The notes: generated by a model not told the origin, from the letters alone. Positions 2,777 through 29,724 are shown, numbered from the stretch's first letter. The stretch is DNA of 64,000 nt from IMGVR_UViG_3300022839_000006:1-64000, one strand, 5' to 3'. Numbers and translations: made by a program.

Positions 2777-3700
2777 ATGTCTTTTGCAAATTTAAAGAAG
2801 AACCGTTCAAGCTCACTGGACAAACTTTCGTCACAGCTTGACAAGATGGCCTCAAAAGGCTTCGCAGATCCCCTCAAAGAAAAATACTGGACCCCTACTC
2901 GCGACACTGCAGGTAATGGATTCGCAATCATTCGCTTTCTGCCTGCTGCAGAGGGTGATGACGTTCCTTTCGTTCGTGTGTGGGATCACGCATTTAAGAG
3001 TACAGGTGGATGGTACATCGAGAAGTCTTTGTCCACTATTGGACAAGATGATCCGTTGGGCAAATTCAACGCAAAGCTGTGGAATACAGGGAACGAAGCT
3101 GACAAAGAGCAAGCTCGCAAGCAGAAGCGTCGTCTGAAGTACCATTCAAACATTCTCGTCGTCAAAGATTCAGCTGAACCTGAAAACGAAGGCAAGGTCT
3201 TTCTTTACGCGTACGGTAAAAAGATCTTTGACAAGCTGAACGACATGATGAAGCCACAGTTCGAAGACGAAACGCCAATCAACCCATTCGACTTCTGGGA
3301 AGGTGCTAACTTCAAACTGAAGATTCGTCAATATGAAGGCTATCCAAACTATGATCGTTCAGAGTGGGAAGAAGCGTCTCAACTGTACGATGGTGACGAA
3401 GTCAAGCTTGAAGAGACGTACAAGCAGCTGAATTCTCTTGCAGAATTGATTGCACCTTCACAGTTCAAAACATACGATGATCTGCAGGCACGTCTCCACA
3501 AAGTGCTTGGCGTTTCAGGCAACCTCGGTGAAAGTAGCAATACAACTGCAGAGAATATGGTTGACGAGGACCTCGACATGAGTAAACTCAGCAACGTTTC
3601 AGAAGAACCTGAAAAGAAGAGCTCTACTTCTGACACGTCCCCGTCCGCTGATACAGACGACGACGATTTGGCATTCTTCCGCAATCTCGCCGACAATTAA
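2777..3700 (+). CDS. 32: Single-stranded DNA-binding protein gp32
   Basis: GNGFAIIRFLP, WYIEKSLST, GKKIFDK, NPFDFWEGANFKLKIR motifs; acidic C-tail DDDDLAFFRNLADN. Confidence 0.97.
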   Translation: MSFANLKKNRSSSLDKLSSQLDKMASKGFADPLKEKYWTPTRDTAGNGFAIIRFLPAAEGDDVPFVRVWDHAFKSTGGWYIEKSLSTIGQDDPLGKFNAKLWNTGNEADKEQARKQKRRLKYHSNILVVKDSAEPENEGKVFLYAYGKKIFDKLNDMMKPQFEDETPINPFDFWEGANFKLKIRQYEGYPNYDRSEWEEASQLYDGDEVKLEETYKQLNSLAELIAPSQFKTYDDLQARLHKVLGVSGNLGESSNTTAENMVDEDLDMSKLSNVSEEPEKKSSTSDTSPSADTDDDDLAFFRNLADN

Positions 3701-3707
3701 GATGTAG

Positions 3708-3743
3708 AGGCGAGGCTGCTGTTTCGAAACAGCAGCCTCGCCT
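3708..3743 (+). terminator. Perfect 36-bp palindrome after gene 32
   Basis: aggcgaggctgctgtttcgaaacagcagcctcgcct is its own reverse complement. Confidence 0.75.
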
Positions 3744-3767
3744 ATTATCATTTAGAAAAATCACATT

Positions 3768-4046
3768 ATGACAAAAAAGACAGACTCAGATGTTGAGTTT
3801 GACTTCGGATTTTCGTTCGTTGACGAGAATGTTGAAGCCAAACTCAAAGAACATTCATCACACAAAGAAGAGATGGAAGAATTGCAATCACGTGTAGATC
3901 TTCTATATGATACCATCACTCCGTTTCTTGACAACTTATGCAGAAACCCAAGCAGGTCTACTATTCTTTGGCCTGATAGAGTGGAAAAGATTACTGAATT
4001 TAAGACACGTTTGAAAATGATCACAGAAGGGAAACATAAAAAATGA
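3768..4046 (+). CDS. Conserved hypothetical protein upstream of uvsX
   Basis: FDFGFSFVDE...FLDNLCRNP....ILWPDR pattern typical of T4-like aquatic phages; overlaps uvsX start. Confidence 0.65.
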   Translation: MTKKTDSDVEFDFGFSFVDENVEAKLKEHSSHKEEMEELQSRVDLLYDTITPFLDNLCRNPSRSTILWPDRVEKITEFKTRLKMITEGKHKK

Positions 4047-4951
4047 GTACACTACTTGAAAAGATGCTAAGCACGGGGAGTACCAAATCTTCTGCTGTTC
4101 TATCCTCATCGCCCTTTTTCAATGCAAAGGAAGCAATTCCTACCGACCTCCCAATTCTCAACATTGCATTTAGTGGATCTATTGATGGTGGGCTTCTACC
4201 AGGATTGACTGTTGTTGCAGGTGTATCAAAGAGCTTCAAAACTCTACTGAGCCTCTACTGCATGAAGGCATATTTGGACAAGTACCCTGAGGGCATTGCG
4301 CTACTATATGATTCTGAGTTTGGTATTACACCAGAGTACATTGAGAGCATCGACATCGACATCGATCGCGTTGTTCACATTCCCGTTAAGGATGTGGAGG
4401 AGCTCAAGTTCGATATGGTTCAAAAGTTAGATGCGATTGGCAAAAAAGACAAAGTGTTTATCATGATTGACTCGGTCGGCAACCTTGCATCTAAGAAAGA
4501 GCTAGAAGATGCACAAAACGAAAAGTCTGTCGCGGACATGTCACGTGCCAAGAGCTTGAAGTCGTTGTTTCGTATCATCACGCCATACCTGACAACTAAA
4601 GGAATTCCGTGCCTTGCAGTGAATCACGTATATTCAGAAATCGGCCTATATCCGAAGGCTATTGTTAGTGGTGGGTGTGTAACTGCAGGTACTAATATTC
4701 AGACCCCAACTGGTCTCAAGTCAATCGAGGATTTCAATGTTGGAGAAAGAGTCATTACGCAGTACGGAGACATGGAAGTATCGCATGTCTGGAATCCTGA
4801 TACACTTGATGATGGCAACCCTGAATGTTTTGAAATTGAATTTGAGGATGGTTACATTGTCACGTGTTCTGATGAACATAGGTTCATTGTTGATGGAGAA
4901 TGGGTCGCAGCTAAAGACCTTAAACTTGGTGCCGAATGTCAAGTCGTTTAA
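4043..4951 (+). CDS. uvsX: UvsX recombinase N-extein fused to split-intein N-half
   Basis: Walker A variant GVSKSFKT, YDSEFG, IDSVGNLAS, DMSRAK; sequence switches at SGG|C to a Hint domain and stops. Confidence 0.95.
   Translation: MSTLLEKMLSTGSTKSSAVLSSSPFFNAKEAIPTDLPILNIAFSGSIDGGLLPGLTVVAGVSKSFKTLLSLYCMKAYLDKYPEGIALLYDSEFGITPEYIESIDIDIDRVVHIPVKDVEELKFDMVQKLDAIGKKDKVFIMIDSVGNLASKKELEDAQNEKSVADMSRAKSLKSLFRIITPYLTTKGIPCLAVNHVYSEIGLYPKAIVSGGCVTAGTNIQTPTGLKSIEDFNVGERVITQYGDMEVSHVWNPDTLDDGNPECFEIEFEDGYIVTCSDEHRFIVDGEWVAAKDLKLGAECQVV
4676..4948 (+). mobile_element. Split intein N-fragment (91 aa) in uvsX
   Basis: Block A C1-VTAGTNIQT; block B VTCSDEHRF; ends W.AAKDLKLG as in IntN halves; followed by a stop codon. 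Confidence 0.92.
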
Positions 4952-4970
4952 AATAATGTTATGAGCAGAG

Positions 4971-5026
4971 TAAGAGAGTCCTTAGTTATTATAAATGATG
5001 ATGACAACAATCAAAGGACTCTCTTA
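4971..5026 (+). promoter_or_regulatory. RBS-sequestering hairpin with a late-promoter-like element in its loop
   Basis: taagagagtcctt (4971-4983) pairs perfectly with aaggactctctta (5014-5026), covering AAGGA and the A of the ATG; TATAAATG at 4990-4997. Confidence 0.75.
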
Positions 5027-5895
5027 TGAACATCATTTACAAGATCACATTTCAACACCGTCTGGCTCAGAACATTCAGCCTTATTATTACATAGGATCA
5101 AAAACTAATTGTACTGTAGTCGAAGGTGTTATATTAAACTCTAAAGGTAAACCATATTACGGCAGTTCAACATGGAAAAACTATTATGATATAGTAGAAT
5201 CTGACACTTGCACAGTAGAAATATTACAAGAAGGATTCACGGACCACAAAGAATTGTTAACGGCTGAATGTGCTGTACAGGAAGAGTTAGAGGTAGTAGT
5301 ATCACCAGAATATTTTAATAGATCATTAGCATCAGTCAGCAATTTCAATAACCCTCTATATGCTTCATATAAGCATGCAACGACTGGCAAAATGGTTAGA
5401 TTAGAAAGGACTCACGAAAAGGTTCTTGACGGAACTTATGTGGGTGTATCTAAAGGTGTAAAGTTTACTGAAGAACAACGTAATAGTCGTGGCAGATCAG
5501 GCAAAGAAAACAAGTTTTACGGAAAAACCCACACTGATGAAACCAAAGCTAAAATATCTGCTGCTAATACCGGAAAGGTACGTACTGAAGAGTTTAAGCA
5601 AGCTGTTTCGGACCGTTGTAAGGGTGTACCAAAATCTCCTGAACATCGAGCAAAGATTGGACGCCCTGGTTTGATTATGCTTAAAAATATCAATACTTTA
5701 CAAACAATTAGAATATCAATAGATGATGCTCTATTACTAGATAATACTACGTGGCTTAACCCACAAAAGGTTAATACAAAAGTTAAAAAGCCTTGTAAAT
5801 ATTGTGGTCGTCTGTTCACAAAAGGAAATATGAACAGATGGCATGGTGAAAAATGCAAAAGTAAGAGTTTACATCCAGATGATAGTTTATTATAA
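5026..5895 (+). CDS. Free-standing GIY-YIG (Seg-like) homing endonuclease with NUMOD3 repeats
   Basis: IIYKIT...YYIGSK, YYGSS, conserved E and YFN; NUMOD3-like NKFYGKTHTDETKAKIS and KSPEHRAKIG; C-terminal CKYC...RWHGEKC. Confidence 0.88.
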   Translation: MNIIYKITFQHRLAQNIQPYYYIGSKTNCTVVEGVILNSKGKPYYGSSTWKNYYDIVESDTCTVEILQEGFTDHKELLTAECAVQEELEVVVSPEYFNRSLASVSNFNNPLYASYKHATTGKMVRLERTHEKVLDGTYVGVSKGVKFTEEQRNSRGRSGKENKFYGKTHTDETKAKISAANTGKVRTEEFKQAVSDRCKGVPKSPEHRAKIGRPGLIMLKNINTLQTIRISIDDALLLDNTTWLNPQKVNTKVKKPCKYCGRLFTKGNMNRWHGEKCKSKSLHPDDSLL

Positions 5896-5926
5896 TTGAC
5901 CAATCCAACACACAAAAGGAAACAAT

Positions 5927-6499
5927 ATGAAAATACGCTCTATTAGATCAGTAGGTAAGTTACCTGTATATGATCTATCAGTAAACAGTGACAATTATGA
6001 TGAGCAGCAATATGTGCTGGAAAATGGTGTAGTTACTCACAATACGGGAATCATGTATTCAGCAAATACTGTGTTCATCATCAGCAAGTCACAAGAGAAA
6101 GACGGAACTGAGCTTGCAGGATGGAAGTTCACAATCAACATCGAGAAGTCACGGTACGTCAAAGAGAAATCTAAACTACCATTCACTGTAATGTATGAGG
6201 ATGGTATACAAAAGTGGACTGCAATCTTCGACATTGCGATGGAATCTGGCTTCATCACGAAACCGAAGGTTGGTTGGTACAATCTTGTTGATCCTGAGAC
6301 AGGCGAAGTAGACGAGAAGAACTATCGTCAGGCAGATGTGGTTACTAACAATGCTTTTTTTGAAAAACTTGTTAAAAACGTGGATTTCAAAGAGTTTGTA
6401 GAGCGCAAGTTCAAACTGTCTGCAACTCAAAAGAAGTCGGACGACAGCCACGGAGAAGATGATGCAGATGTGGAAATGGACATGGACACATACGAATAA
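5927..6499 (+). CDS. uvsX: Split-intein C-half (39 aa, 5927-6043) fused to UvsX C-extein
   Basis: Own RBS aaagga; block F VYDLSV; block G VVTHN|T; then TGIMYSANTVFII..KSRYVKEKSK matching T4 UvsX after GG. Confidence 0.95.
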   Translation: MKIRSIRSVGKLPVYDLSVNSDNYDEQQYVLENGVVTHNTGIMYSANTVFIISKSQEKDGTELAGWKFTINIEKSRYVKEKSKLPFTVMYEDGIQKWTAIFDIAMESGFITKPKVGWYNLVDPETGEVDEKNYRQADVVTNNAFFEKLVKNVDFKEFVERKFKLSATQKKSDDSHGEDDADVEMDMDTYE

Positions 6500-6516
6500 A
6501 CAGTGTACAATTGAAT

Positions 6517-6543
6517 GATGGGCAGAGTGATACTCTGCCCATC
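6517..6543 (+). terminator. 12-bp stem hairpin between uvsX and 41
   Basis: gatgggcagagt-gat-actctgcccatc. Confidence 0.55.
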
Positions 6544-6570
6544 CCATTTCCATTATAACAAGAGGTCCTG

Positions 6571-7956
6571 ATGATAGAGCAAACTATTCTTGCTAATCTA
6601 CTTTACAATGGGGAGTTTTGTCGCAAAGTCATCCCATACATCAAAGAAGAGTATTTTGATGATGTTGCTACCAAAAAGATATTTGCATCTTTCTCTGAAT
6701 ATGTCAGTACATACAAAGAACCACCTTCAATTGAGGCTCTCAAGATTACGCTGGAGGCGCGTAAAGATCTCAACGAGGATTTGTTTAAAGCTGTTAATAC
6801 AGCCGTCGACGAGTTGAAGATTGATGCAGCAACTAATCAAGATTGGCTTTTAGGCGAGACAGAGAAGTTCTGCCAAGACAAGGATCTGTTCAATTCAATT
6901 AGAAAAGCAATTTTGATTCTTGATGGGCAAGACAAAGAGTTTGACAAGGGTGCTATTCCTAAGCTGTTGTCTGATTCGCTTGGAATCAACTTTGATAGTC
7001 ACATTGGGCATGATTATATTGAAGATGCAGACAGTCGTTATGATTTCTATCATCGCACAGAAGAGCGAATTCCTTTTGACATTGATCTGTTGAACCAAAT
7101 CACTAAGGGTGGACTGCCCCGCAAATCCTTGACGTTGATTTTAGCGACCACAGGTGGTGGCAAAAGTTTGATGAAATGTCACATGGCTGCAGCTTCTCTT
7201 ATGCATGCCAAGAACGTCCTCTACATAACAGCTGAGATGGCTGAGGAGAGAATTGCAGAACGCATTGATGCTAATCTATTAGACGTCACAATTGATCAGC
7301 TACGAGAAATGCCCAGAGAAATGTTCAATACAAGAATTGCCAAGGTTAAAAGCAGAACGCCCGGAAAACTTGTAGTCAAAGAATACCCTACAGGGTCTGC
7401 TCACGCAGGACACTTTAGACATCTTCTCAATGAGCTGAAACTAAAGAAGGGGTTTGTTCCTGATATTATCTTCATTGATTATCTCAACATCTGTGCATCT
7501 TCTCGTGTGAAGGGTGCAGCAGCCGCAAACTCATACACACTGGTCAAGTCAATCGCTGAGGAAATACGTGGTTTAGCAATGGAGTTTGATTGTCCTATTG
7601 TATCGTCAAGTCAGTACAACCGCGGAGCATACGATTCGAGCGACGTTGACCTCACAAACACGTCTGAATGTATCTACGTTAAAGAAACAGTTACCATGAG
7701 TGACGGAACGTCGAGATGCATATCTGACCTGAAACCAGGCGACAAAATTAAAAGCGAAGACAGTACAAAGCTAGTCACGATGGTCCACCATCCTAAGATG
7801 AAGGATTGTGTCAAGATTAAAATGAACAGCGGCAAGTCAATCACTGTCAGTAAGGATCACGTATTTCCATCTATGTCAAACGACGGTGTTGTGTCGCGAC
7901 TATCTGTCAGTCAGGGACTAAATGTAGGTTACAGTCTTAATGTGGTAGAGGATTAA
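6571..7956 (+). CDS. 41: Replicative helicase gp41 N-extein fused to split-intein N-half (7669-7953, 95 aa)
   Basis: Walker A ATTGGGKS, AEMAEERIAERIDAN, IFIDYLN, SIAEEIRGLA; switches at NTSE|C to Hint (block B ITVSKDHVF). Confidence 0.95.
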   Translation: MIEQTILANLLYNGEFCRKVIPYIKEEYFDDVATKKIFASFSEYVSTYKEPPSIEALKITLEARKDLNEDLFKAVNTAVDELKIDAATNQDWLLGETEKFCQDKDLFNSIRKAILILDGQDKEFDKGAIPKLLSDSLGINFDSHIGHDYIEDADSRYDFYHRTEERIPFDIDLLNQITKGGLPRKSLTLILATTGGGKSLMKCHMAAASLMHAKNVLYITAEMAEERIAERIDANLLDVTIDQLREMPREMFNTRIAKVKSRTPGKLVVKEYPTGSAHAGHFRHLLNELKLKKGFVPDIIFIDYLNICASSRVKGAAAANSYTLVKSIAEEIRGLAMEFDCPIVSSSQYNRGAYDSSDVDLTNTSECIYVKETVTMSDGTSRCISDLKPGDKIKSEDSTKLVTMVHHPKMKDCVKIKMNSGKSITVSKDHVFPSMSNDGVVSRLSVSQGLNVGYSLNVVED

Positions 7957-7959
7957 CAT

Positions 7960-8574
7960 ATGAATGACAGCCAAATGGAAAAGATGCAGAACGATTGTTT
8001 TGTTAAAGCTCATCATATGATCGCCAATAACATGACCAAAGAGATGGACTTGTTTGACCTGACAGATCTGCTGATAAGCATGGAGATGGAGAAGGAGGAG
8101 AAGCAACAGGTTGAAGACAGTAAAATTGATTATAATGATACCATTGTAGAAATTGAGAATGTCGGCATGGTGGAAACGGTAGATATATCTGTAACAGGTA
8201 GTCAATTGTTCTACTGCAACAACATCTTGACAAAAAACAGCATGGGGATTGCTCACACTGCAGATTGTATCCTCGGCTTGATCTCTTCAGAAGAATTGGA
8301 GGCGATGGGCCAAATCATGATCAAGCAGTTAAAAAACAGATGGGGCGATCTTGGATTCTATAGACGGTTTGTTGTTGGAATAGACAGATCAAAAATGAAG
8401 CTGTATGACTTGGAAGAAGGTGCGCAGAGCGATGTTCAAAACGAGACAAGGAAAAAACAACAACCACGAGAGGATGAGGATAAGCCTACGTTCGATACCT
8501 CTAACTTCGGACAAGAGGAATCATTTAGAATGAAACCTTCTTGGAAGAAAACTAAGGCAGACGGATTCATATGA
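7960..8574 (+). CDS. 41: Split-intein C-half (7960-8238) fused to gp41 C-extein
   Basis: RBS GAGGA at 7948-7952; block F TVDISV; block G ILTKN|S; then SMGIAHTAD...KQLKNRWGD..RFVVGIDRSKMKLYD. Confidence 0.93.
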   Translation: MNDSQMEKMQNDCFVKAHHMIANNMTKEMDLFDLTDLLISMEMEKEEKQQVEDSKIDYNDTIVEIENVGMVETVDISVTGSQLFYCNNILTKNSMGIAHTADCILGLISSEELEAMGQIMIKQLKNRWGDLGFYRRFVVGIDRSKMKLYDLEEGAQSDVQNETRKKQQPREDEDKPTFDTSNFGQEESFRMKPSWKKTKADGFI

Positions 8575-8663
8575 TAAGATAGTTGCCTTTTGTGTAGAGG
8601 CGCGCTATGATTAGGTAACAGCTCAACGCGTTGAGTTATAAATACAAACACAGCCGAAAGGAA

Positions 8664-9197
8664 ATGAAGATGATTGACTATGATGTACTGAAGAAGCAGA
8701 TTGACGCGATCAAAGGAACCACGTTTGCTGGTCTGACTACAAAGACCTCTGTCAAGCTCAAGGGTGGCAAGAAGAACCTGCAGCAAGGTCGTGTTACCAA
8801 AACTACAGAGAAGGCAAACATCATGTTGTTTTCCAACTCGTCTGTTAATGGATATGAAGGCATGGTCAAGCGTCGTATGGTTGCAGAAGGCAAAGATCCA
8901 GAGACATTTGTACTCAAGCCAAGGCCATGGGGCAAGCGTATTGACAATAGCCCGTTCATTGAACACAACGGTAAGTATTACCTCGAGTGTTTTTTCATTA
9001 ATGCAGGGACATCTTCATACTTCCTTGACGATGAGCCTATTGACAGGAAAGACGTTGAAGGTTTGGACGATCCGAAAGAGAAGACCGAAACACAAGTGGA
9101 ATCTCAGGGTGGAATTGACGACAAGGTTATACTGAGAACATTTGCTCTCGAGTCTATCCTTTCTATTAAAATCAAGAGTGAGGAGTACACAGCGTAA
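8664..9197 (+). CDS. Conserved hypothetical phage protein
   Basis: RBS aaagga; YEGMVKRRMVAEGKDP..F.LKPRPWG.R..NSPFIEHNGKYYLE pattern. Confidence 0.65.
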   Translation: MKMIDYDVLKKQIDAIKGTTFAGLTTKTSVKLKGGKKNLQQGRVTKTTEKANIMLFSNSSVNGYEGMVKRRMVAEGKDPETFVLKPRPWGKRIDNSPFIEHNGKYYLECFFINAGTSSYFLDDEPIDRKDVEGLDDPKEKTETQVESQGGIDDKVILRTFALESILSIKIKSEEYTA

Positions 9198-27627: not shown

Positions 27628-29724
27628 ATGGATAGACGAGAACCATTTTATTGGCTAAACGAAGACTCGCGCAAATTCTTGTCACGAGGATATTTGAGCG
27701 AATCGGAAACACCTGAAAGTCGCATTCGCGACATTGCAAACACTGCAGAAAAATACCTTAACGAACCAGGATTTGCAGATAAATTCTACGAATATATGAG
27801 TCGTGGATATTATTCATTGGCTTCGCCTGTGTGGGCTAACTACGGCAAAGCGCGTGGTTTACCTGTTTCGTGCTTTGGATCATACATTGACGATCACATG
27901 GAATCGATTATGTACGGTGTTGCTGAAAACGGCATGCTAATGAAAAACGGTGGCGGGTGCTCTGGTTACTTCGGTGCAGTACGTCCACGTGGTTCCCATA
28001 TTAAGGATTCAGGCGAGTCCTCAGGATCTGTTCACTTTATGCAGCTATATGATACACTGTCGTCTGTAATATCGCAAGGGTCTGTTCGCAGAGGGTTCTT
28101 CACAGCATATCAAGACATCGATCACAAAGATGCGGACGAGTTCCTTGATATCGGTTCAGAAGGCAATCCGATTCAAGGTCTGACAACAGGAATTGTTGTA
28201 TCGGACGATTTTATTCGTCAGGTCAAGGCAGGTGATGCAGAGAAGCGTCGTCTTTGGGCTAAGGTTCTTCAACGTAGATCAGAGATGGGATATCCATACA
28301 TCCTATTTGGCGATAATGTAAACAATAACAAGCCACAGGTTTATAAAGACAAGGATATGCGTGTTCATGCTAGTAACATGTGCCTTCGTGGGGACAGTGT
28401 TATTACAATACAACTTCCTTCCAACACGCTTCCTGAAGTCGTTGAAATTGAAACATTCTGTAAGTTGTGGGCTATTGGCGGTATCCCATCTGATACAAAG
28501 GTTAAAACAGAACATGGTTTTCAAGTGGTGACTGCTGCTGCTCAAACAGGGTCCACTAAAGATATGATTCGAATCACAGACGATGTTACAGGAAAAGTTG
28601 TTGAGTGTACGCCCAACCACAAGCTATTCACTCAAAATAGAGGTTGGGTCGAGGCTCAAGATCTTACAGAAGAAGATCAATTGCTGATTGATGGTTCGTC
28701 GAGCAAAACAATCAAAACAGAAAGAATTACGTACGAAGAAGAAATCCCTGTGTACGACATCACAGTGCCAGAAACGCAATCATTTTTTGCTAATGATGTA
28801 TTAGTACACAACTGTGCAGAAATTTCCCTACCATCTTCTGTCGATGAGACGTTTACGTGTGTGCTTTCCTCAATTAACGTACTCTTTTGGGACGAACTCG
28901 CTCAAACAGATGCAATTGAAGTGATGACTAAATTTCTTGATACGGTATGCGAAGAATTTATCATCAAGACAGAGGGCCAAGAGTATCTCAAACGTGCACG
29001 AAACTTTGCAATTAATCACCGTGCATTGGGCGTAGGCATTCTTGGTTGGCACTCGTATCTTCAATCAAACATGATTCCTTTTGAATCGAAGGCAGCCTCC
29101 AAAAAGAATCTTGAGATTGCTAAGACGCTTCAGGAAAGATCGCATGCAGCCTCACGCGAGCTCGCTGTGTCGCTGGGCGAGCCTCCACTGCTTGAAGGCT
29201 ATGGAATGCGTAACGCAACTACCATGGCAATTGCGCCGACGCGGTCTAGTTCGTTTATTTTAGGACAAGTCAGCCAGTCCATTGAACCTGAATTCTCCAA
29301 CTGTTACGTCAAAGATCTTGCTAAGATTAAAGTAACAATCAAAAACCCCTACCTTGACAAACTACTTAGTGAAAAAGACAAAAATACGTATGATGTGTGG
29401 GAGTCGATTAAGACAAACGACGGATCAGTACAACACCTTACGTTTTTGACTGATGAAGAGAAGGAAGTGTTCAAGACGTTCTCGGAGATAAATGCATATG
29501 CAGTAATTGATCACGCTGCAATCAGACAACAATACATCGACCAAGGACAGAGCTTGAATCTTATGCTAGATCCTGACATGTCTGTAAAGGAAATCAACGC
29601 ACTGTATCTGTATGCACACGAGATGGGTGTAAAGAGTCTGTATTACAGCTTCTCAATGTCTGCTGCACAAGCGTTGACACGTAAGCGTGTACAATCGATG
29701 GACTGTGCTGCTTGCGAAGCCTAA
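27628..29724 (+). CDS. nrdA: Ribonucleotide reductase alpha subunit lacking an ATP-cone, with a cis mini-intein
   Basis: SPVWANYG..RGLPVSCF, GGGCSG, VRRG, SNM|C..HN|CAEI, RALGVGILG, AIAPT, QGQSLN, KSLYY, C-terminal CAAC. Confidence 0.95.
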   Translation: MDRREPFYWLNEDSRKFLSRGYLSESETPESRIRDIANTAEKYLNEPGFADKFYEYMSRGYYSLASPVWANYGKARGLPVSCFGSYIDDHMESIMYGVAENGMLMKNGGGCSGYFGAVRPRGSHIKDSGESSGSVHFMQLYDTLSSVISQGSVRRGFFTAYQDIDHKDADEFLDIGSEGNPIQGLTTGIVVSDDFIRQVKAGDAEKRRLWAKVLQRRSEMGYPYILFGDNVNNNKPQVYKDKDMRVHASNMCLRGDSVITIQLPSNTLPEVVEIETFCKLWAIGGIPSDTKVKTEHGFQVVTAAAQTGSTKDMIRITDDVTGKVVECTPNHKLFTQNRGWVEAQDLTEEDQLLIDGSSSKTIKTERITYEEEIPVYDITVPETQSFFANDVLVHNCAEISLPSSVDETFTCVLSSINVLFWDELAQTDAIEVMTKFLDTVCEEFIIKTEGQEYLKRARNFAINHRALGVGILGWHSYLQSNMIPFESKAASKKNLEIAKTLQERSHAASRELAVSLGEPPLLEGYGMRNATTMAIAPTRSSSFILGQVSQSIEPEFSNCYVKDLAKIKVTIKNPYLDKLLSEKDKNTYDVWESIKTNDGSVQHLTFLTDEEKEVFKTFSEINAYAVIDHAAIRQQYIDQGQSLNLMLDPDMSVKEINALYLYAHEMGVKSLYYSFSMSAAQALTRKRVQSMDCAACEA
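28381..28812 (+). mobile_element. 144-aa mini-intein without endonuclease at the catalytic cysteine of NrdA
   Basis: C1-LRGDSVI; block B ECTPNHKLF; block F VYDITV; block G VLVHN|C; excision restores SNMCAEI. Confidence 0.95.

Follow-up and report, generated by a model that had tools for sequence, protein, structure and literature searches.

Genes fractured by split inteins were described by Dassa, London, Stoddard, Schueler-Furman and Pietrokovski in 2009 and comprise gp41-1 to gp41-9, NrdA, NrdJ, IMPDH, DnaE, ligase and terminase (PMC2677866). In such genes the host protein's N-terminal part with the N-terminal half of the intein (IntN), a short spacer, a free-standing endonuclease gene with a 5' hairpin, and the C-terminal half of the intein (IntC) with the rest of the host protein follow each other on one strand, the endonuclease being of the GIY-YIG or another type and the hosts being phage DNA-metabolism genes (PMC2677866). 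Here we describe a locus of the same layout in the stretch IMGVR_UViG_3300022839_000006:1-64000 (64,000 nucleotides (nt) of a 208-kb contig, called the window below at its full length), where the recombinase gene uvsX of a T4-like phage is interrupted. The original prediction, made from the sequence of the window alone, held that uvsX is fractured by a split intein whose halves flank an endonuclease gene, and that this layout was known from marine metagenomes, for example for gp41 and nucleotide reductases. The former is confirmed by the open reading frames (ORFs) and by matches to the T4 UvsX structure and to inteins, and the latter agrees with the published set, which includes gp41-1 to gp41-9, NrdA and NrdJ (PMC2677866).

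The dimensions are also similar, with IntN of 88-105 amino acids (aa) and IntC of 33-54 aa in the 2009 set (PMC2677866) and 91 and 39 aa, respectively, in the window. That set includes the endonuclease-less variant gp41-7 (PMC2677866), and endonuclease-less loci occur in the UvsX family as well. UvsX is absent from the eight host enzyme types of the set and is mentioned only where an intact uvsX lies next to fractured gp41 (PMC2677866). The present locus differs in its host protein and insertion site and has threonine at position +1, and the UvsX family extends beyond metagenome reads to cultured phages with finished genomes. Among solved structures, the closest is the gp41-1 intein (PDB 6QAZ/6RIZ), both by the IntN sequence and by the fold of a contiguous homologue. 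The two share a block-B motif of the C-S-E-E-H type and the same canonical split point. However, their identity is only about 22-24%, the host of gp41-1 is a helicase, and the residue +1 is serine in gp41-1 and threonine in the UvsX intein.

Inteins in the same host superfamily are found in RecA of Mycobacterium and RadA of Pyrococcus. They also interrupt conserved recombinase motifs, but they are contiguous: unlike the split intein of UvsX, they splice in cis and carry nested LAGLIDADG domains or are minimised versions. The intein of Mtu RecA follows Lys251, and that of RadA lies in the P-loop. The intein of M. leprae RecA lies in loop L2, presumably about 8 residues upstream of the position equivalent to the UvsX site. 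A survey gives 56 bacterial RecA inteins (PMC4760082). The original prediction knew of no characterised split intein in the RecA/UvsX family. We found no paper in the open literature on a UvsX split intein at the present site; inteins of RecA-family proteins are well known in contiguous form (PMC4760082). Both the Thanatos genome paper and a Morganella phage paper citing Proteus phage Pm5461 leave the UvsX intein unmentioned. Thiel et al. (2014) and Bachmann and Mootz (2015) are said to have reported atypically split inteins, 'VidaL UvsX-1/-2', in metagenomic UvsX, with a very short N-terminal fragment. The window intein is split canonically (91 and 39 aa), and the solved VidaL intein (6VGV) is a distant match to the fold model of its homologue P0013 described below (rank 19, 14% identity).

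Free-standing GIY-YIG or HNH enzymes with NUMOD modules, to which the endonuclease of the window probably belongs, are represented by T4 SegA and other Seg/Mob enzymes (PMC2988022). SegA, a GIY-YIG enzyme encoded beside uvsX, cuts uvsX (PMC2988022). As at the present locus, where both signals are candidates, the ribosome-binding site of Seg/Mob genes is hidden in a hairpin that also contains a late promoter, and downstream genes have promoters within the endonuclease gene (PMC2988022). The SegA gene stands beside, not inside, uvsX and therefore needs no intein, whereas the endonuclease gene of the window stands inside uvsX.

The locus, 4043-6499 (+), consists of three ORFs on one strand, encoding UvsX-N plus IntN, a homing endonuclease, and IntC plus UvsX-C in this order (Table 1). 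The first ORF, 4043-4951 (+), encodes 302 aa, namely 211 aa of UvsX followed by the 91-aa intein half. Residues 1-211 of UvsX align without gaps with chain residues 5-186 of T4 UvsX (PDB 3IO5; E 1.4e-63) and match the Pfam RecA family. The third ORF, 5927-6499 (+), encodes 190 aa, and its part starting with TGIMYSA aligns with 3IO5 from Thr187 on (E 2.5e-31) and matches Pfam T4_UVSX_C. The two UvsX halves abut on this structure, the N half ending at chain residue 186 and the C half resuming at 187. With the intein removed, they form a RecA core and a T4 UvsX C-terminal domain collinear with T4 UvsX. The outer ORFs have a separate stop (TAA, 4949-4951) and start (ATG 5927 with a Shine-Dalgarno box). 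The coordinates and junctions originally given (SGG/C, IntN of 91 aa, IntC of 39 aa, THN/T, with the slash marking the junction) are correct to the base.

Table 1. Features of the fractured uvsX locus, in window coordinates.
Feature	Position	Strand	Description
uvsX 5' part (N-extein)	4043..4675	+	UvsX residues 1-211, last residues KAIVSGG
Intein N-half (IntN)	4676..4951	+	91 aa, Cys1-Val91, blocks A and B (..VTCSDEHRF..); TAA at 4949-4951
RNA hairpin, 14-bp stem	4970..5027	+	4970-4983 pairs with 5014-5027; -28.6 kcal/mol
TATAAATG, late-promoter-like box	4990..4997	+	in hairpin loop; one base off T4 late promoter TATAAATA
Homing endonuclease gene, free-standing	5026..5895	+	289 aa; Pfam NUMOD3, PHROG 7504/314
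Candidate sigma-70-like promoter	5868..5896	+	TTTACA, 17-nt spacer, TATAAT; 11/12 consensus matches
Shine-Dalgarno box AAGGA of the C-half ORF	5916..5920	+	6 nt before ATG 5927; unstructured leader
Intein C-half (IntC)	5927..6043	+	39 aa, MKIRS...VYDLSV...ENGVVTHN; blocks F and G, terminal His-Asn
uvsX 3' part (C-extein)	6044..6499	+	151 aa and stop, Thr+1 first (TGIMYSANTVF...)

The inserted halves have the residues expected of a class-1 intein. The IntN of the window matches the gp41-1 intein (6QAZ) with E 2.4e-7. We compared it with 120 listed homologous proteins and with a set of 83 loci, 80 from IMG/VR and three from cultured phages (locus L004 is the window itself, 100% identical and with the same coordinates). 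Cys212, which directly follows SGG, is part of a GG/C junction conserved in all 120 proteins and all 83 loci. Cys1 and the block-B residues Ser65 and His68 (motif S-D-x-H, TCSDEHRF in the window) are invariant across 34 IntN sequences, together with many structural residues. The C-terminal junction is HN/T in 76 of the 78 readable cases and HN/S in the other two; in the window it is VVTHN/T. The Thr+1 is the native, conserved threonine of the UvsX GG-TG motif, and threonine is a legitimate, if less common, intein nucleophile (PMC13014065). All split IntC homologues have a common start position, M-K/Q-I/V, a length of 35 or 39 aa and HN at the end, and in 118 of the 120 listed homologues the stop codon of the N-terminal ORF comes after 91-107 aa of intein. 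In the window, the net charge of IntN is -14 and that of the first 20 aa of IntC is +3, a supportive rather than strictly defining feature; electrostatic pairing of halves has been described for other split inteins (PMC2677866). These residues and motifs place the UvsX intein among the canonical class-1 HINT inteins; its split lies between blocks B and F, where endonucleases are usually inserted.

The fold was modelled on a contiguous natural homologue, P0013 (about 70% identical), rather than on the two pieces from the window, using an alignment of four contiguous intein rows. The AlphaFold2 (AF2) model is a HINT domain that matches 56 intein or HINT structures at E<=1e-3. The best match in PDB is the gp41-1 split intein (E 1.9e-8, template modelling (TM) score 0.67/0.74), followed by DnaB, DnaE and RecA inteins, and the structures of the Mtu RecA and Pho RadA mini-inteins are among the matches. 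Both intein halves are under purifying selection: the median ratio of nonsynonymous to synonymous substitutions (dN/dS) is 0.22 for IntN and 0.20-0.23 for IntC, with dS near saturation in most pairs, and the IntN of the window compared with that of the sibling contig L005 has dN 0.014 and dS 0.22. When the halves were aligned separately by MAFFT, the 35-39-aa IntC were placed on the first 40 residues of IntN (MKI..GK.PVYDLSV on TEIQ..GLK.VEDFNVG), and the pseudo-two-fold symmetry within HINT domains may be the reason.

The sequence expected of the spliced product is that of intein-less alleles. Among the 80 IMG/VR UvsX genes nearest to the N-extein of the window, 10 contain the intein and 70 do not. 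The intein-less proteins read SGG-TGI(M/Y)YSAN, one of them being SGG-SGI, and the nearest one, L086 (85% identical), reads SGG-TGIMYSANTVFII, exactly the predicted ligation product. The claim that splicing would restore SGGTGIMYSA is supported by the identity of the predicted junction to that of intein-less alleles.

We infer the following course of events. Two polypeptides, UvsX(1-211)-IntN and IntC-UvsX (C-terminal part), would be produced. The acidic 91-aa IntN and the basic-headed 39-aa IntC would then associate into the HINT fold, and the exteins would be ligated via Cys1, Thr+1 and cyclisation of the terminal asparagine, yielding an ordinary 362-aa UvsX with the sequence SGG-TGIMYSA. 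We regard it as highly probable that protein trans-splicing restores ordinary UvsX in this way. There is a slim chance that the UvsX fragments function without covalent ligation, the intein halves serving only as a high-affinity dimerisation handle. Indeed, the two NrdA pieces of Aeromonas phage Aeh1 assemble around the mobE insertion without splicing (PMC2677866, PMC2988022), and the spliced UvsX has so far been read from sequence. However, residues that matter only for the chemistry (Cys1, block-B Ser and His, terminal His-Asn, Thr or Ser+1) are essentially invariant across hundreds of divergent copies. Moreover, a retained 130-aa HINT domain directly after the region homologous to the DNA-binding loop L2 of RecA should disturb the filament.

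The same intein at the same site was found in 192 protein clusters, when the intein part of the N-terminal ORF was used as a query against a collection of 5.8 billion proteins, and in 165 IMG/VR contigs. The recurrence of the N-half, the split point, the C-half and the junction residues in these clusters and contigs places the layout far beyond chance. Megablast of 4043-6499 against GenBank phages produced no match, and thus a search at the protein level was needed. It yielded 25 records with the same IntN (49-57% identical) at the same place, corresponding to about 19 phages. The carriers include phages of Escherichia coli (HY03, ELT1, BYEP01, SYGD1, RPN226), Salmonella (pSe_SNUABM_01, SEA1, CF-SP2), Yersinia (TG1), Proteus (PM2/Pm5461), Pseudomonas (PspYZU05), Shewanella (Thanatos-1) and Vibrio (VmeM-32, EniLVp02), as well as Enterobacter, Klebsiella and Shigella phages. 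A search of phage genomes for the insertion site, which the original prediction had proposed as a check, has accordingly found it in IMG/VR contigs and cultured phages alike. The rarity implied by that prediction did not hold, since the layout is widespread and present in cultured coliphages already in GenBank. All three GenBank carrier records that we examined have the order UvsX-N plus IntN, homing endonuclease, IntC plus UvsX-C. Their products are labelled 'DNA repair protein' or 'recombination protein', 'homing endonuclease', and 'recombinase' or 'recombination protein', and the intein is unmentioned in each.

A second UvsX insertion site was observed in protein P0002 (409 aa, ENA metagenome), whose UvsX N-terminal ORF contains two inteins. 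A complete mini-intein (NHTYQ/CGTKE...IISHN/TQEMF) lies where the L2-equivalent region begins, 13 residues upstream of the usual split IntN that follows SGG.

The uvsX gene is very unlikely to be a decaying pseudogene with the intein halves and the endonuclease gene as functionless remnants. Endonuclease genes in the gap do decay, leaving remnants and empty gaps, and UvsX has been reported missing in some T4-like Acinetobacter phages (PMC4177764). However, both exteins are full-length and highly similar to T4 UvsX, the dN/dS of the intein halves is about 0.06-0.2, and the layout is kept in plaque-forming cultured phages of at least six host genera. It is extremely improbable that joining of the halves takes place in RNA or through recoding (an intron, ribosomal bypass, stop read-through) or that the locus is an assembly artefact: although the N and C ORFs of the window share a frame across the 975 nt between the IntN stop and the IntC start, models of group I and group II introns have no match in 3600-8700 even at E up to 1, the gap is occupied by an entire endonuclease ORF that has a frame and a Shine-Dalgarno box of its own, the halves share a frame in only 20 of 52 loci, about the chance level, and the same split recurs both among assemblies made independently and among cultured phages whose genomes are finished. 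Maintenance of a common N and C frame by constraint is ruled out by the same count.

The distribution of the insertion among alleles points to mobility. Intein-plus and intein-less alleles are interleaved at equal extein distance. The nucleotide flanks of L106 (intein-plus) and L095-L097 (intein-less) are 99% identical on both sides, and locally they differ solely by three silent changes, which fall within the 12 nt that precede the insertion point. Such a pair is what the recent gain or loss of a mobile cassette leaves behind, and it supports an element whose endonuclease targets empty alleles. In mixed infections, the endonuclease would cut intein-less uvsX near the GG/TG site, and recombinational repair would copy the whole cassette (IntN, endonuclease gene, IntC) into the cut alleles. 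We believe that a late-expressed endonuclease probably homes the cassette into empty alleles, with less confidence than we have in splicing. Homing of introns and endonucleases in T4 depends on UvsX (PMC2988022), and therefore the element would sit in, and depend on restoring, the very recombinase that copies it.

The gap between the intein halves is a place of intense turnover. Two of the 83 loci are contiguous, in 12 the gap measures 27-142 nt and could not accommodate a gene, five have remnants of 230-298 nt, and 62 (62 of the 79 split loci) have gaps of 720-1440 nt with an ORF; the remaining two contigs end before the C half. The gap ORFs are of at least four kinds. Proteins with HNH plus NUMOD3 are the commonest, and the others are the window type, a classical Seg-like GIY-YIG enzyme (Thanatos-1, Pfam PF01541/PF19835), a further Seg-like type and a 497-aa PHROG 3339 protein. 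A tree of the intein halves with 51 distinct rows requires at least 23 changes of the gap state. Among the sister pairs that are well supported and differ in state are L004 (the window, full gene) and L005 (deletion), L080 and L083 (two nuclease types), L057 and L054 (HNH and remnant), and L010 (contiguous) and L027. L005 (IMGVR_UViG_3300022837_000097) is the closest relative of the window, with uvsX 97-99% identical. Comparison of its positions 4351-4575 with window positions 5026-5927 shows that its endonuclease gene has lost about 677 nt internally, with no damage to either intein half, to the regulatory hairpin or to the start of the C half. This locus is a snapshot of endonuclease decay.

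Two of the 120 listed homologues, P0013 (492 aa) and P0024 (472 aa; loci L010 and L011), are UvsX proteins with a contiguous mini-intein. On the intein tree, split alleles surround L010, which has an in-frame Met-Lys-Ile at the usual IntC start, and in L027 an extended IntN ends in a fossil of the endonuclease C-terminal (zinc-)finger. Thus, the contiguous form may be secondary, that is, a split intein re-fused after loss of the endonuclease gene, which we offer only as a suggestion. All stages of the homing cycle are found at this site: full endonuclease genes, deletion remnants, empty split inteins, contiguous mini-inteins and a plus/minus pair.

The product of ORF 5026-5895 matches Pfam NUMOD3 in two stretches (E 5e-10) and the PHROG 'homing endonuclease' families 7504 and 314. 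It consists of a probable N-terminal nuclease domain of about 105 aa and of NUMOD3 with a C-terminal DNA-binding, zinc-finger-like module at about 5470-5892. The GC content of the gene is 31-39%, compared with 43-45% for uvsX. In the N-terminal domain, Tyr5, Tyr22-Ile23-Gly24, Glu81 and Asn98 are invariant in nine homologues, and so is Arg12, although it is away from the usual Arg position. The AF2 model has a predicted local distance difference test score (pLDDT) of 85, and its single coherent set of matches in PDB is the I-TevI catalytic domain. Alignment by hhalign to a Pfam-positive GIY-YIG endonuclease brings the YIG and Glu positions together with E 9e-4 and a probability of only 22%. 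As a word-based homologue search with the N-terminal domain gave one match, the profile used for fold prediction was shallow (eight sequences). On this evidence the domain is probably a divergent GIY-YIG nuclease.

The C-terminal 140 aa or so of the same enzyme (window 5470-5892) contain NUMOD3, the KIGR...L.N motif, W.NP and the finger C..C...WH...C, and are 39-45% identical to the C-termini of HNH enzymes from L006, L007, L028, L045 and L063. Thus, HNH-type and probable GIY-YIG-type enzymes of the same intein gap have a common C-terminal module and unrelated nuclease heads, which suggests that different heads are mounted on one DNA-binding module with one target. This is a case of natural nuclease-domain swapping.

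Candidate expression signals were found around both internal starts. The hairpin before the endonuclease gene has a z-score of -5.0 relative to 200 shuffled sequences, none of which folds as well, and it pairs the endonuclease Shine-Dalgarno box AAGGA (5014-5018) and the first two bases of AUG. On early and middle read-through mRNA the endonuclease would be silent, with its ribosome-binding site buried by this hairpin. It would probably be translated late, from a transcript begun at the late-promoter-like box in the hairpin loop: such a transcript would lack the 5' arm of the hairpin, and therefore the ribosome site would be exposed. This arrangement of a hairpin and a late promoter has been demonstrated experimentally for I-TevI and described for I-TevII, I-TevIII, segB and Aeh1 mobE (PMC2988022). 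We surveyed 39 distinct endonuclease-bearing loci, using 95 nt per start (80 upstream and 15 inside the gene). The median fold energy is -18.9 kcal/mol at the endonuclease start versus -8.9 kcal/mol at the IntC start, the ribosome-binding site is paired by at least 70% in 15 loci at the former and in none at the latter, and in 27 loci TATAAAT occurs in the spacer that separates the IntN stop from the start of the endonuclease gene. At the C-half start, the fold of window region 5870-5960 is no better than shuffled sequences (z +1.65), and IntC starts are open in all 39 related loci. The candidate sigma-70-like promoter, located inside the endonuclease 3' end upstream of the C-half ORF, has the best promoter-like score in 3600-6700. 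In T4, promoters of downstream genes are embedded in endonuclease (seg) genes (PMC2988022). No terminators were found between the three ORFs, and therefore read-through transcription is also likely.

Several observations weigh against the proposed combination of trans-splicing and late homing. Splicing, transcription starts and cleavage are all deduced from nucleotide and protein sequences, and both the late-promoter-like TATAAATG and the sigma-70-like site are matches to a consensus and nothing more. The matches of the window IntN to Pfam Hint_2, PT-HINT and Intein_splicing do not reach the gathering cut-offs. The AF2 model of P0013 is of moderate quality (pLDDT 68) and poor over the last 20 residues, including block G. 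A glycine at position -1 severely impairs an engineered split intein in at least one case, unrelated to the present one (PMC13014065), and hence the rate of splicing here could be slow. As for the endonuclease, Pfam GIY-YIG gave no match at E<=0.05, and the I-TevI catalytic domain, although the best Foldseek match, is a weak one (E 0.26, probability 0.69, TM score 0.54). Of the GIY-YIG/NUMOD3 gene originally predicted, the NUMOD3 part is secure, whereas the GIY-YIG part is only probable.

A bolder reading, to which we assign a rather low probability, is that these loci represent an undescribed large family of natural canonical UvsX split inteins, with trans-splicing going beyond neutral repair of the damage done by a parasite and acting as a post-translational timer for recombination-dependent replication. 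Such a family may be delineated by the Cys1/Thr+1 pair, IntC of 35-39 aa, hundreds of variants, contiguous or re-fused forms and cultured coliphage carriers. The N half could come from early and middle transcripts and the C half partly from its own promoter in the endonuclease gene. The system may form a self-referential loop, in which homing of the endonuclease depends on the recombinase it interrupts.

The fractured uvsX gene of the window belongs to the T4 replication and recombination module, gp59 - gp32 - uvsX - gp41. A strong hairpin resembling an intrinsic terminator (3708-3743 (+), a 16-bp stem with 10 G-C pairs, then a T-rich tail) lies directly downstream of gene 32 (2777-3700) and upstream of a 92-aa ORF, 3768-4046, which overlaps the uvsX start by 4 nt.

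The gp41 helicase gene of the window, 6571-8574 (+), is also split by an intein, without an endonuclease gene, and resembles in this respect the endonuclease-less gp41-7 locus of Dassa et al. (2009). Its N-terminal ORF, 6571-7956, ends with a Hint N-half of about 95 aa after TNTSE/C, and its C-terminal ORF, 7960-8574, starts with about 92 intein residues ending in ILTKN/SMGIAHTAD. The junction at 7954-7962 reads TAA, CAT, ATG in the same frame, with AGAGGA just upstream, and looks like a stop-restart site. L005 has an identical gp41 arrangement. The gp41 intein halves have no significant similarity to the UvsX intein halves, and thus the two pairs are likely to be orthogonal. The large subunit of ribonucleotide reductase (27628-29724 (+), 698 aa) has a contiguous mini-intein at the catalytic-Cys motif (HASNM/CLRGDS...NDVLVHN/CAEISLPS; Pfam Intein_splicing 44.3 bits, gathering cut-off 35.8). 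Together with those of uvsX and gp41, this makes three inteins with three architectures in 64 kb: split with an endonuclease, split without one, and contiguous.

Overall, the UvsX element is real and well supported, and mechanistically it is ordinary for the fractured-gene class; its novelty is in the host protein and the site. It calls for a correction of annotation, as many GenBank phage records label the halves 'DNA repair protein' and 'recombinase' with the intein unnoted. Hundreds of natural canonical split-intein variants with the uncommon Cys1/Thr+1 pair and a short IntC, in a family structurally closest to the very fast gp41-1 intein, form a panel for protein-ligation tools. The homing cycle is unusually complete for one site, and its nucleases, whether GIY-YIG, HNH or others, are built around a common DNA-binding module. 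Finally, the original fractured genes were known only from metagenome reads, whereas the uvsX architecture is present in phages of E. coli, Salmonella, Yersinia, Proteus, Shewanella and Vibrio that form plaques. Genetics can therefore be applied to what trans-splicing does naturally, how fast it is and what it costs, and to how a split-intein cassette homes.

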